From the sequence record OR805294.1: DNA of 64,000 bases. One strand, given 5' to 3'. Every line of letters starts with the position of its first letter. The stretch's first letter is position 1. The notes beneath the pieces were generated by a model. It did no database searches and was not told where the DNA came from. It saw only the letters and a list, made by a program, of their open reading frames with translations. Made by a program: the position numbers and the translations under genes. This document shows positions 35,715 through 40,289 of this stretch, piece after piece.

Positions 35715-38089
35715 TATAGATTTACCCAGGATGAAAAATATACTTGTAATGATGCTAATCCCGGATCGTCATATTCCCTCGAATAATCTTGATAACCGGT
35801 TCCGTCGTTGTTATTAAAATTACTGTTTAATGTACTAGCAACGTCAAAGTATGATAATGTTTTGTTATAGCAATATATAGACACTGCTCTAAATGCTTTA
35901 GAATAGTTAACAACATCTCCCTCTATGGCACCTACGTGCCCCTCTGACATACATTGTGTCATAACAACATAATTTGTATTTGTTGGACGCAAAGTAGTAA
36001 AATAGAATCTATATAATCCTGTTCCTAATTTTGTTATAGATAAGTTTAAAGTGTTTATTACAAAGAAGGAACCGCCCGTAAGGTTTGTGTCTGAGAATGA
36101 TGCCAGACCTTTTGGCATATCTATTTCTACTTTCCAGTCATATCCTAAATAAGTTACTAATTGGTCCCTGCTAGCAAAACGAACATAATTGTCATTAGTA
36201 TTATTGTTTCTAAATGTTACTTGGGCATTTACTGACATAGGGTCTGCATTAGTGTATGTCATACTAAATGAAGATGCAGACAGATACCCGCCGTTTGCAT
36301 CAGGAAGATTAGAAGGCGTATATCTTACTGCTATTGTGTTGGCACCCGGACTAGTTGAATTTATTTTACCGTTAAGTAAATATGAATCTACGGCAGTACC
36401 GTTCCACGCTAATGCTCCTACTTCGGCAGCAGTCGGCGGCCGTCTGTCGTGGAATGCTAAATTACCAGAACCTATATATAGATTGTCTGCTTTAAATGAT
36501 ATGATACTATTTGCTACTAATGGCGTATTTATTGCACCAGTATCATAGAAGACAAACTGTATTCCGTTATCTAATGTATTGTTAGTAACCATATTCATAC
36601 TAACAGCAGTAGTATTATTTTGAGAATGAATATCTGTAACAGTACCGCCTAGTATTAGACTAGTTCCATAATTAGGTTTATATGCTAATCTGAAACTATT
36701 ATCATTCATTACTATTACATCTCCTGATGTAACAGATGAAGTTATAGACGAAGTAACAAACGGTGTTTGTTTTTTAACGTAAGCTGTGCTATCTAACCCG
36801 CCTAGTAATTCTGAATCCGGAGAAGAACTATTTGATTTATCTACGAATAGATTATTATATTCTTGGGAATTGTATGTTTCGTTTTTACCATATATAGATA
36901 AATTATTTCTAGCGGCTGCCTTATTTAAAACATCTGCTAGGTTCAGTGTTTTATCGAATGTATTTACGTTATCTACTAACCCTAGACCTATTTGTTCTTT
37001 TGTAACTTGATGAGGGTCGTTTTTATCATTAATGTGAGCACTAAGTAAATCTAATGTGCCTTGAGTTAATGGATGCCATTTTGCTAAATTTGTAAATTCA
37101 CCGGGTTCTCCTACATATACATAAAATGATCCTTGTGTCCCGGGTCCCTCTGTTTTATACCATAGTTGTCCTTTTATAGCATTTTGGGGAGGAGAAGAAC
37201 TAGCAAAGTTTTCTACCATCCATATCATGGATTCACTAAATGCCTTTTCGTAACCTGCCGAATTATATCCTGGCATAGATATAGAAAGTAAGTTAGAAGA
37301 AATATAGTTATCAGGTACATTTAATCCTGGAATCTTGTTATAGCACTTTGCAGAAAAAGATAATACCTCGAAAGTACATAAATCCTGATTACCTGATACA
37401 AATCCAAATAATGCAGATGTTTTAAAATCGGTTAGTGTATCATCGTTTAGATCTATAGTAAATACTGAGTTATCTAATATTATGTTAGAATTCCAGTCGG
37501 AACACTTAGCTGTTATTTTATTATTTTCTCTAATTACATTAATAATTGTATATCTATTTGACCAACCAAGATATCCTGTAGATGATGTAGAAGTAGCCCC
37601 AGCAGGACTGTTAATTCCTATTGTTTTACTAGAAAGAATTGTTCTAGTTTTATTGTTATCTAAAATTAGTTCCCAATTCCTTTCAGACCCGCTGCTTGAT
37701 GTATTACCTAATGACCGGACAGCAGATATATATTTTCCTTTTTGTCCAGCAACACACAAACCTAACCTGTTATTTCTTATAGAACTACTAGATATTTTTA
37801 TTGTAATATTAAAATCACTAACTTGATCCATGTATAACGCATAGCTATATAACGATGCTGCATTAGTTGATATAGGATCGGGAGTTCTTGTGTAAGAAAG
37901 AATAGAAGTAGCTGACCATCCCGCAGTGATGCCGCCCATTGCTTTTCCTTCCCATGCATCATACAAGTTAACTGATGTAGCTTTTGACCAATCAGAAACA
38001 ACTTCTTGGTAACTAGGAAAAGAAGTTAGTTCTCTATTTTGGTAATAATTATTTGATAAACGTAATTCGTAACCCATGACAATGCTCAA
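35714..38089 (-). CDS. Tail fibre/spike paralog 1 with extra ~270-aa N-terminal domain
   Basis: ENFASSSPPQNAIKGQLWY, NDPHQVTKEQIGLGLV, NLSITKLGTGLYRF. Confidence 0.75.
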   Translation of the reverse strand: MSIVMGYELRLSNNYYQNRELTSFPSYQEVVSDWSKATSVNLYDAWEGKAMGGITAGWSATSILSYTRTPDPISTNAASLYSYALYMDQVSDFNITIKISSSSIRNNRLGLCVAGQKGKYISAVRSLGNTSSSGSERNWELILDNNKTRTILSSKTIGINSPAGATSTSSTGYLGWSNRYTIINVIRENNKITAKCSDWNSNIILDNSVFTIDLNDDTLTDFKTSALFGFVSGNQDLCTFEVLSFSAKCYNKIPGLNVPDNYISSNLLSISMPGYNSAGYEKAFSESMIWMVENFASSSPPQNAIKGQLWYKTEGPGTQGSFYVYVGEPGEFTNLAKWHPLTQGTLDLLSAHINDKNDPHQVTKEQIGLGLVDNVNTFDKTLNLADVLNKAAARNNLSIYGKNETYNSQEYNNLFVDKSNSSSPDSELLGGLDSTAYVKKQTPFVTSSITSSVTSGDVIVMNDNSFRLAYKPNYGTSLILGGTVTDIHSQNNTTAVSMNMVTNNTLDNGIQFVFYDTGAINTPLVANSIISFKADNLYIGSGNLAFHDRRPPTAAEVGALAWNGTAVDSYLLNGKINSTSPGANTIAVRYTPSNLPDANGGYLSASSFSMTYTNADPMSVNAQVTFRNNNTNDNYVRFASRDQLVTYLGYDWKVEIDMPKGLASFSDTNLTGGSFFVINTLNLSITKLGTGLYRFYFTTLRPTNTNYVVMTQCMSEGHVGAIEGDVVNYSKAFRAVSIYCYNKTLSYFDVASTLNSNFNNNDGTGYQDYSREYDDPGLASLQVYFSSWVNL

Positions 38090-38101
38090 TATTCTTTATG
38101 A

Positions 38102-38109
38102 TATTTATC
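38102..38109 (-). promoter_or_regulatory. Putative late promoter GATAAATA (fibre operon)
   Basis: Octamer just upstream of the first fibre gene. Confidence 0.6.
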
Positions 38110-38172
38110 ATAGTAATTTTAGGTAAATTTATGAAATTATATTTATTTTCTTTTATAAAACATAAAATATAG

Positions 38173-38201
38173 TTGTTTAATTTAACTGGGTGTAATATAA
38201 T
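38173..38201 (+). promoter_or_regulatory. Sigma70-type promoter ahead of a structured non-coding segment
   Basis: TTGTTT-17 bp-TATAAT. Confidence 0.55.
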
Positions 38202-38206
38202 TTGTA

Positions 38207-38475
38207 GTGTATGCAATACATTTGCATATATACCAAGCACTGTATGGTGAGTTGCATACAGCGATGGGCAATCGTAGTGCCGACATTGATCTAGTATGAT
38301 CTGAAATAGGTCCCTTACGCCGAGGTAAGGCTATCTGGCACGGATAGTAGTGGATGTGTATGTTCGAAATAACGATATCATATTTTAGACATACGCCGCC
38401 GTCAGCATTTTTAGTTTGCAACTGCTGATATCTTTGAGTTTTGTTGATGGCCGGGGGTGGTGCCCAGTGCATTTT
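38207..38475 (+). ncRNA. Candidate ~270-nt structured RNA with possible pseudoknot
   Basis: GC-rich island in AT-rich intergenic DNA with at least 7 hairpins/helices and complementary 5'/3' segments (see findings). Confidence 0.5.
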
Positions 38476-38672
38476 TATTGTAGAGTTAATGTGTAAAAGA
38501 AATAAACGTGCTTAAAGACGAGGTTCTTTTCTAAAACTGTTTCTAAAAATAATTGCGTTAAAACCTTGGGTTTAATTAATGTATTATATATGCTATATAA
38601 TTAGCCCTACATAAACATGTATGTTTAACTTGTTTAGTTAACAATAAAATATGCAAATTAAGGAATTAACTG

Positions 38673-38840
38673 ATGACCAAATTTAATAAAAAATCGTTAG
38701 ATACATATGAAGATAGAGAAGATTATAGAGATGAAGAAACTGGTGACAGGTTAAATAATAAGAAATCTGAACCTAAAAAAAATAATACTGATTATAAGCC
38801 GTTTGGTAAAATTACCAACCGCTATAATAATGATAATTAA
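38673..38840 (+). CDS. Small charged hypothetical protein (55 aa, not in ORF track)
   Basis: AAGGAA SD then MTKFNKKSLDTYEDREDYRDEETGDRLNNKKSEPKK...NNDN*. Confidence 0.5.
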   Translation: MTKFNKKSLDTYEDREDYRDEETGDRLNNKKSEPKKNNTDYKPFGKITNRYNNDN

Positions 38841-38868: not shown

Positions 38869-39288
38869 GTGATAATAATGATAGAAACTATTTTAACCTC
38901 GAGAGTATTTGCTTATGTAGTTTGCATAGGTATAATATCGTTAGCAATAACGCTCTCATATCAAAAATATCAAAAGCTTATTAGTGTAAATAAATCTCTT
39001 GAACAATCTATAGAAACGTTAACTAATGATAATAATTCATTGCAGTTAACTATTTCTGAACAAAATAAAAAGATTGAAACATATATTCAACTTAGATTAT
39101 ATGAAGAATCTATAGCCAAACAAAAAGCAGAATCACATGCTGCTTTAGAAAAACAATTACAAGATACTAAATCTCAGTTAAATGAATTAATAGAACGTAG
39201 AAAGAATGAGGCACCAAATGATCAAAGTGTGTTATGCTCTACTGTCAGGATTGATCCTGCTTTACGCAACTGGATGCTCGCAAACTAA
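38869..39288 (+). CDS. Inner-membrane spanin (Rz-like)
   Basis: N-terminal TM helix, long coiled coil, C-terminal CS...IDPALRNW; overlaps a lipoprotein gene. Confidence 0.75.
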   Translation: MIIMIETILTSRVFAYVVCIGIISLAITLSYQKYQKLISVNKSLEQSIETLTNDNNSLQLTISEQNKKIETYIQLRLYEESIAKQKAESHAALEKQLQDTKSQLNELIERRKNEAPNDQSVLCSTVRIDPALRNWMLAN

Positions 39289-39535
39289 ACCAGTTAAGTC
39301 TGTAGTGATAGAAAAGGAAATAGTTCCTGTTCTTCCGCCAGATTCTCTTATAGTATATTGTTACGAAAATGAAAATCCCGATACGTATGGCGAAGCGGTA
39401 GGTTCGGTTAAAAAACTAAAATCTATAATTAAAAATTCTTGTAATAAAAATATGAAAGATATAGAACTTTGGAAATCTGAAGTTAAAAAACTATATCCTA
39501 CTGCGAATGACTTAGAAACAAAAAAGCAGCCTTAA
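39206..39535 (+). CDS. Outer-membrane spanin lipoprotein (Rz1-like)
   Basis: Lipobox LYATG-C, then Pro-rich VPVLPPDSL and a second Cys; overlapped with the i-spanin. Confidence 0.75.
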   Translation: MRHQMIKVCYALLSGLILLYATGCSQTKPVKSVVIEKEIVPVLPPDSLIVYCYENENPDTYGEAVGSVKKLKSIIKNSCNKNMKDIELWKSEVKKLYPTANDLETKKQP

Positions 39536-39546
39536 GCTGCTTTTTT
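39520..39546. terminator. Bidirectional terminator between spanins and holin
   Basis: AAAAAAGCAGC-cttaa-GCTGCTTTTTT. Confidence 0.8.
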
Positions 39547-39795
39547 ATTGTCCGAGTCGCATGGGTTTATTTTATCTTTTATATTCTGTTTTATATAACT
39601 TCCTGCAATACCTAGTATACTAAACAAACATACTAATCCTATAAATACGTGAGTTTCTATCAAAGAACTAAATCCAATAATTGCTGGAACACCGTATTGT
39701 GCAATAGCCATTAATAAATTCACTACATGGAAAATATAAGAATATCTTTTATATATTTTAGTCCAATTATCTGTTAATTTAAGTTTCCTAAACAT
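39532..39795 (-). CDS. Holin
   Basis: 87 aa with two hydrophobic segments and a charged tail; KLTDNW..IYKRYS N-terminus; overlaps the endolysin end. Confidence 0.7.
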   Translation of the reverse strand: MFRKLKLTDNWTKIYKRYSYIFHVVNLLMAIAQYGVPAIIGFSSLIETHVFIGLVCLFSILGIAGSYIKQNIKDKINPCDSDNKKAA

Positions 39796-40289
39796 ACATT
39801 CCTCTCTTCAGTTCTTCGTTTTACTAATCCTTTTAAAACAACTCCTCCTGCTTTAGTCCATTTTAGCAATTCGTTGCATGCTCCTACTTTATCGCCTGCA
39901 TTTAATTTTCTAAGCATTGTGGATTGATTTCCATTTTTTAATGTGACAAATCCGTCTTTAACCCCTTTTTTCCCTGGTCCTACGTTATATAAGAACGAAA
40001 GAAACGCAGCATGTTCGTATGGCGTTAATTCTACCTTTACTACATTTGTTAAGATTTTATTATGTTCTAAAAGATCTTTTGCTAATTGATCCAAACATTG
40101 GCTGTCTGTAAATTGTTGTCCTTTTTTTAGCTCAGGTCCGGTGTGACCGTAGCAAGATGTTAAAATTCCTACTGGATCTACATATACCTTGTTTACTTTA
40201 CCTTCAAACGGAGCCAATAGTGCTCCTCCTAGTGCAATTGCACCGGATAATCCCATTGCAATTAATTTTTTTCTAATATTATTATCCAT
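39774..40289 (-). CDS. SAR endolysin, GH24 muramidase (R21-like)
   Basis: Gly/Ala-rich SAR helix LIAMGLSGAIALGGALL, then catalytic E-8aa-D-5aa-T (FEG...YVDPVGILT) and GLVKRRTEERNVC. Confidence 0.9.
   Translation of the reverse strand: MDNNIRKKLIAMGLSGAIALGGALLAPFEGKVNKVYVDPVGILTSCYGHTGPELKKGQQFTDSQCLDQLAKDLLEHNKILTNVVKVELTPYEHAAFLSFLYNVGPGKKGVKDGFVTLKNGNQSTMLRKLNAGDKVGACNELLKWTKAGGVVLKGLVKRRTEERNVCLGNLN

Follow-up and report, generated by a model that had tools for sequence, protein, structure and literature searches.

ncRNA003 of PA5oct-like jumbo phages: a non-coding RNA gene with a conserved core and a predicted compact fold upstream of spanin genes

The window analysed here, a stretch of DNA of 64,000 nt, corresponds to positions 223741–287740 of Ettore, a Pseudomonas jumbo phage of the PA5oct group (Wroclawvirus, Arenbergviridae). 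Within it, a GC-rich island stands out from AT-rich surroundings: in 100-nt windows the GC content is 0.40–0.48 at 38200–38450, compared with 0.15–0.25 in the flanks, and a whole-genome scan places the edges of the island at Ettore 261944–262211, that is, window 38204–38471. Both scans thus recover the GC-rich island that had been noted in a preliminary description made from the letters alone, and the minus-strand 791-aa fibre gene adjoins it, in the back-to-back arrangement with the fibre operon described there. The features around and downstream of the island are the following.

38173–38201, plus strand: promoter P1, sigma-70-type, with TTGTTT (38173–78), a 17-nt spacer and a perfect -10 box TATAAT (38196–201), read from the sequence
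38182–38472, minus strand: 96-aa ORF, annotated as hypothetical protein ETTORE_0486, spurious by stop, codon usage and RNA coverage
38480–38672, plus strand: AT-rich, fast-evolving spacer with a second promoter-like site (-10 TATAAT, 38596–601) and the ribosome-binding site of orf55
38673–38840, plus strand: orf55 (gp169 of PA5oct), 55 aa, hydrophilic, rich in K, D, E and N, with gene-like codon usage and no PHROG family
38869–39288 and 39206–39535, plus strand: overlapping Rz-like and Rz1-like spanin ORFs, which match Rz-like spanin PHROGs
39532–39795 and 39774–40289, minus strand: holin-like ORF and endolysin, which converge on the spanins

A blastn search of 50,697 phage records with a 561-nt query around the GC-rich stretch matched 11 GenBank phage records at 97.5–100 % identity, all of them from the PA5oct group. 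The Ettore copy is 100 % identical to the query. The copy in PA5oct (MK797984) is 98.9 % identical over 561 nt and syntenic, lying between a YomR-like fibre gene and gp169, and is annotated as ncRNA003 or 'putative lncRNA' (EST35_0168, 103065–103668, plus strand, 604 nt). The stretch is therefore the gene of ncRNA003, a published non-coding RNA that PA5oct-like jumbo phages make from the plus strand. The Ettore and PA5oct RNAs share locus, strand and gene, and since they come from sister phages no biological difference separates them. The match to an annotated RNA means that the RNA is real but already known since 2020, and the 'new sRNA' of the preliminary description has to be given up as new.

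ncRNA003 was defined by RNA-Seq, with coordinates 103065–103368, plus strand, 304 nt in Table 1 of that study; its share of the phage reads is 0.01 % in the early, 0.05 % in the middle and 0.03 % in the late stage, and no promoter, structure or function was given for it (Lood et al. 2020, PMC7318152). We found no later literature on its function. The annotated RNA begins at PA5oct 103065 (window 38220) and ends at window position 38523 or so (paper) or at about 38824 (GenBank). Exactly 300 nt lie between these two 3' ends, and by the GenBank coordinates the RNA would run into the gp169 CDS; a typing error in one of the two sources is probable.

Promoter P1, claimed before as TTGTTT-17-TATAAT, can be read directly in the sequence. 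It is constant across eight phages of the PA5oct group, which form our conservation set, except for spacer positions 38185 and 38188. A consensus scanner does not list it because its -35 box fits at just three of six positions. Two public RNA-Seq runs that carry the exact variants of PA5oct gave contigs beginning at 38215 and 38227, about 14–26 nt past the -10 box. There is zero contig cover over 38055–38207, and low-depth contigs of the fibre gene stop at 37926 and 38052. A transcript start at about 38206–38209, with coverage lost at the extreme end, would fit these contig edges. Two further RNA-labelled runs assembled the core alone (38250–38401 and 38266–38449), and the public runs holding the stretch contain near-identical copies throughout. 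The contigs hold neither strand nor local-depth information, and the assignment to the plus strand comes from the stranded data of PMC7318152. The preliminary description depended on a plus-strand transcript, and one is on record as ncRNA003; the contigs start just 3' of the promoter. The contig starting at 38227 carries 30 foreign nt in front, identical to PA5oct 234073–234102 and resembling a gene start (ATGGCTAAAAAAG...), with the junction inside the first hairpin described below. Most likely, two abundant RNAs were joined into a chimera during library preparation or assembly.

Pharokka-type annotations place a hypothetical protein opposite the RNA, of 96 aa in Ettore and of 79 aa in Cassandra, PAC2 and Deifobo. 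We consider a minus-strand gene of either length barely conceivable. The 96-aa frame is open in Ettore and MIJ3, but six of the eight phages have a TAA at codon 13, and what remains, the only part annotated in Cassandra, PAC2 and Deifobo, is a 79-aa frame with a TTG start and without a ribosome-binding site. GC3 is 0.41 for the 96-aa ORF and 0.37 for the 79-aa remainder, against 0.17–0.27 in nine neighbouring genes, and the codon log-likelihood ratio per codon is -0.17 for the 96-aa ORF, against +0.13 to +0.33 in the same nine genes. The ORF has no PHROG match, RNA coverage ends inside it at 38215, and the published strand is the opposite one. In favour of a gene, its third codon positions hold four of the five variable sites in 38182–38421 (chance p about 0.045). 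We take this excess to be a coincidence, since the promoter spacer accounts for two of the sites and hairpin loops for another two, and the remaining one changes a G-U pair to A-U. Judged from its sequence, the 96-aa ORF is not a gene, and the protein calls opposite ncRNA003 look spurious. A protein conserved on this strand would have spoken against the RNA, as the preliminary description had pointed out; what we find is a frame that is not conserved, closed in most of the phages and atypical in GC3 and codon usage. Small ORFs on the plus strand were rejected as well: the longest has 30 aa, and both variable sites in a 27-aa ORF with an ATG start would be non-synonymous.

The core of the RNA varies much less than its surroundings. 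Among the eight phages only one of 160 columns varies in the core (38237–38396) and eight of 273 in the whole RNA, compared with 16 of 193, including two 1-nt indels, in the spacer 3' of it (core versus spacer, Fisher p = 6e-4). About 7.5 % of third codon positions vary in the fibre gene and about 7 % in orf55. Variability of the core is thus more than 10x below that of the adjoining spacer and of synonymous sites and is comparable to that of non-synonymous codon positions. The alignment shows the mark of strong purifying selection on the RNA core.

Thermodynamic folding gives a predicted structure of about 273 nt (38207–38479) that consists of a 5' hairpin, a multi-helix domain and a U-run. 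Its elements, all on the plus strand, are as follows; probabilities are those of pairing.

38207–38231: H1, 5'-terminal 10-bp hairpin (38207–16/38222–31, loop UACAU), found by MFE and alifold, probability 0.89
38237–38470: multi-helix domain, found by MFE, alifold and pair probabilities, closed by helix P1 (38237–41/38466–70, probability about 0.65)
38242–59: H2, probability 0.89–1.0
38262–88: H3, probability about 0.65
38289–38355: H4, a 67-nt rod with the tip 38313–18/38325–30, probability 0.89–1.0
38356–96: H5, probability 0.89–1.0
38398–38451: H6, probability 0.89–1.0
38454–65: H7, a marginal 3-bp helix, probability 0.27
38471–38479: U-run AUUUUUAUU, directly 3' of helix P1, where the GC island and the conservation end

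The plus strand has an MFE of -90.7 kcal/mol (z -2.97; none of 200 dinucleotide shuffles was as stable), the minus strand one of -65.1 kcal/mol (z -1.97). The plus-strand RNA reached z -3.95 when scored alongside 60 pieces of 278 nt drawn at random from this phage's DNA, whose z values had a mean of -0.88, an sd of 1.32 and a minimum of -3.8. Since the value of the RNA is the lowest and yet lies within the tail of the background, folding energy alone is suggestive and not decisive, and background windows reaching -3.8 have to be counted against the structure. Among the 86 predicted pairs, 15 are G-U pairs, which would be A-C mismatches on the other strand, so that the plus strand is favoured. 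The hairpins form sequentially in folds of the growing chain, and they persist in the fold of a 494-nt long transcript.

Complementarity holds for every helix listed in the preliminary description, but the thermodynamic ensemble contains just four, with probabilities of 0.89–1.0: 38210–16/38222–28 (in H1), 38241–46/38255–60 (in H2), 38313–18/38325–30 (the H4 tip) and 38358–63/38389–94 (in H5). The others (GCAC/GUGC, CGAU/AUCG, 38331–35/38343–47, 38402–07/38423–28 and 38396–400/38456–60) have probabilities of at most 0.06, and enforcing the local three-way junction built from such helices costs +5.5 kcal/mol. The GGGCA/UGCCC pairing proposed as a pseudoknot has a probability of 0.24, as a nested alternative, and does not demonstrate a pseudoknot. 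A tertiary or kissing contact may more plausibly be sought between the apical loop of H5 (38371–38380) and the large internal loop of H6 (38426–38435): both hold the palindrome GAUAUC, and the two segments are complementary at nine of ten positions. The inner hairpin loop of H6 holds a second palindrome, UUGCAA. For the ribozyme that had also been suggested, we found nothing pointing to one. What stands of the first observations is the GC island, the promoter, the position and the lack of a tRNA or tmRNA, together with the reading as a non-coding plus-strand RNA gene; several helices, the pseudoknot, the ribozyme and the newness of the RNA do not.

Variation is compatible with the fold. The sole variable site in H1 (38218) is in its loop. 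Among the eight variable columns of the RNA, five are unpaired, two form the pair 38401:38448 and one breaks just the marginal H7, in MIJ3. At 38401:38448, six phages have G-U, PAC2 has A-U and MIJ3 has G-C, so that the two positions pair in all three states. None of the 86 pairs shows changes on both sides among the eight phages. As the known copies are all at least 97.5 % identical, no compensatory change is available, and the homolog search, proposed earlier as a check, did not demonstrate covariation. The predicted structure draws its support from folding energy, the uneven occurrence of G-U pairs on the two strands and a single pair that has changed twice, each time on one side. In MIJ3 only, four substitutions are clustered within 11 nt (38448–38458; 649–659 of the MIJ3 locus L003). 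Two of them add pairs to the hairpin before the U-run and one makes the G-U of H6 into G-C. The cluster may be either a recombination patch or the result of selection on the 3' hairpin.

Chance folding in a functionless transcribed relic, a GC-rich remnant of an older element with a promoter-like site upstream, has to be considered at this point. The very low abundance of the RNA, its lack of relatives in the databases searched and the stable background windows would be expected of such a relic, and the Ettore genome contains 100 stretches of at least 45 % GC. The constraint on the core is not what a relic would show, nor are the match of the island edges to fold and transcript start, the strand-specific G-U bias and the GC content of only 15–25 % in other non-coding DNA of the region. 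We regard a relic as improbable.

The U-run is likely a weak terminator or a processing point that forms the 3' end of a discrete RNA. A scanner called no canonical intrinsic terminator at ncRNA003; in seven phages just a 3-bp GGG/CCC hairpin and the 5-bp helix P1 stand ahead of AUUUUUAUU, while MIJ3 has a stronger hairpin (five pairs in the MFE fold) that ends a few nt short of the U-run. The PA5oct RNA-Seq contigs run unbroken from 38215 past 39297, spanning the 38480–38672 spacer and continuing through orf55 and the spanin genes. Because of these contigs and of the differing lengths on record (604 nt in GenBank, 304 nt in the paper), a discrete 3' end is something that we infer. The coincidence of the island edges (38204–38471) with the fold counts in favour of a discrete RNA; the unbroken contigs, the lack of a canonical terminator and a share of at most 0.05 % of phage reads count against it.

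Since the contigs continue into orf55 and the spanins, they agree both with a stand-alone RNA and with a cis-acting leader, which is the main rival to the former. As a leader, fold and U-run would be an attenuator, an antitermination or a stability element in a 5' UTR of about 465 nt, would set how much transcription from promoter P1 reaches orf55 and the spanins and would hence contribute to the timing of lysis. The RNA indeed lies directly upstream of these genes in the same orientation, its 604-nt GenBank version reaches into orf55, the U-run follows a closing helix, and the assembly of the leader part alone in two runs is what one would expect if the leader outnumbers the body of the transcript. 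Against this, the terminator is weak in seven of eight phages, and contig continuity is no proof of a single transcript. Between the fold and orf55 lie 193 nt of fast-evolving spacer that hold a perfect -10 box of their own, and folding of the long transcript leaves the orf55 ribosome-binding site unpaired. Matches to riboswitch or leader families were absent, and we found no support for an alternative antiterminator fold, the alternative fold costing the same +5.5 kcal/mol at a probability of at most 0.06. A leader is a possibility that we rate as serious, though on the unlikely side. We also considered that H1 might pair over a long range with the segment just 5' of the orf55 ribosome-binding site and rejected this, since a match of 10 nt is no more than chance would give and does not form in the long-transcript fold.

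The gene that such a leader would precede is probably real, as all four variable sites of orf55 in the eight phages fall at third codon positions. The two spanins behind it are annotated in PA5oct as 'structural proteins' from mass spectrometry. Plus-strand read-through past them would run antisense to the holin and endolysin genes.

Searches for relatives left ncRNA003 an orphan. No Rfam 15 family matched at gathering thresholds across the window, and a permissive search returned just two chance-level matches (E 8–10), neither within the fold, where nothing matched at E<=10; the comparison with Rfam that had been advised thus assigns no family at either threshold. No tRNA or tmRNA was found at the stretch, in agreement with the first impression. 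The phage's own 288-kb genome contains neither a paralogue nor an extended antisense match to the RNA, and a covariance model built on the RNA found only its own locus in Ettore. The same model found nothing in HRDY3, Hallingskeid, EJP2, RaK2 and GAP32 or in eight IMG/VR loci carrying relatives of the endolysin, the best of which (L038) has about 50 % GC and is not syntenic. Neither IMG/VR nor JGI metagenome contigs nor GTDB genomes contain exact core words of the RNA. The neighbouring proteins are hardly more widespread: for the fibre protein, IMG/VR gave no relatives, GenBank phages gave local matches that were all short, and a set of 5.8 billion proteins gave a single one at 26 % identity, encoded on a contig that is not syntenic; no relatives of either spanin were found outside the PA5oct group. 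ncRNA003 is an orphan that is confined to a phage group with identities of about 97.5–100 %.

A discrete RNA that depends on its fold and that ends at the U-run by leaky termination or by processing is our best reading of these data, and we give it an even chance of being right. Start site, 3' end, fold and any function of ncRNA003 are used here as we infer them. The host sigma-70 RNA polymerase would initiate at about 38207 from TTGTTT-17-TATAAT, and the nascent chain would fold hairpin after hairpin, from H1, H2 and H3 through the H4 rod to H5 and H6. The 3' strand AGUGC would then shut helix P1 and gather the hairpins into one junction just 5' of the U-run (38471–79). Part of the transcripts would stop at the U-run or be trimmed to it, yielding a compact RNA of about 265–273 nt whose 5' hairpin would be protected, and the remaining transcripts would read through into orf55 and the spanin genes. 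The constraint on the core and the lack of an extended antisense match in the phage genome make an action through the fold most likely: the RNA would bind a phage or host protein, as a scaffold or decoy, and not act by base-pairing.

Taken further, ncRNA003 might found a new class of RNAs, compact, structured and acting in trans, that is restricted to Wroclawvirus. It would bind and divert a protein of the host or the phage, such as a factor in RNA decay, defence or lysis timing, or would possess an unrecognised catalysis. We regard this extension as tentative and rather doubtful.

Another role would be that of a primer or R-loop RNA at a replication origin, as in T4 oriF/oriG or ColE1 RNA II, where a G-rich RNA enters an AT-rich unwinding region. 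The RNA strand has a positive GC skew (+0.13 to +0.37), an AT-rich stretch follows 3' of the fold, the abundance is low and a phage RNase H-like protein has been reported (PMC7318152). The tight self-folding of the RNA would compete with hybrid formation, and an origin at this place was rejected on GC skew, as the cumulative curve has no turning point at the locus; the primer role is very improbable.

Several known systems resemble parts of this arrangement. In lambda, the PR'-tR' '6S RNA' is a promoter-proximal short RNA upstream of the lysis genes S-R-Rz, with read-through on the same strand. ncRNA003 would share with it the short promoter-proximal RNA ending at a U-run and the read-through into lysis genes of the same strand. 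However, there is no sequence relation, neither a Q-like antiterminator nor a qut site was identified, and ncRNA003 is much more GC-rich and structured, with a weak terminator. With riboswitch and attenuator leaders, HK022 put and EAR it has in common a predicted folded domain, a closing helix of the P1 kind next to a U-run and downstream genes on the same strand; in contrast to them, it has no Rfam match, and 193 nt of unconstrained spacer and a second promoter-like site come before the gene. GOLLD and ROOL are likewise GC-rich multi-helix non-coding islands in AT-rich phage genomes, but ncRNA003 is far smaller (about 270 nt), matches no model and occurs in a single phage species group.

PA5oct is under consideration for phage therapy and serves as a model of jumbo phages, and its four RNA-Seq-defined ncRNAs have been without characterisation so far. 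ncRNA003 can now be tied to a promoter, a predicted start site, a predicted fold and a strand, which makes it a concrete target for deletion, pull-down and structure probing, and a spurious protein annotation can be flagged in at least four GenBank records. The discovery is a modest one because the RNA was on record, is scarce and, as an orphan, has no relatives that would reveal its function.

A few other ideas were followed and dropped. A sponge for Rsm/Csr proteins is not supported, as the RNA has just two GGA motifs, both within stems, and no tandem repeats or ToxI-like array were found. H1 does not represent a genome-wide operator: the perfect TATGCAA-N5-TTGCATA occurs once, and the other 24 sites are mismatched in one or both halves and variable in spacing. 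T-box-like tRNA sensing was rejected as well, since RF00230 has no match at E<=10 in the whole phage genome and MIJ3 alters the key U (U to C in the UGGU at 38458). The segment UGGUGCCC (38458–65) shows full complementarity to the 3'-terminal 8 nt (GGGCACCA) of one tRNA-Leu gene of the phage, tRNA-Leu(UAA) (Ettore 139351–139435), a match that is near chance level.
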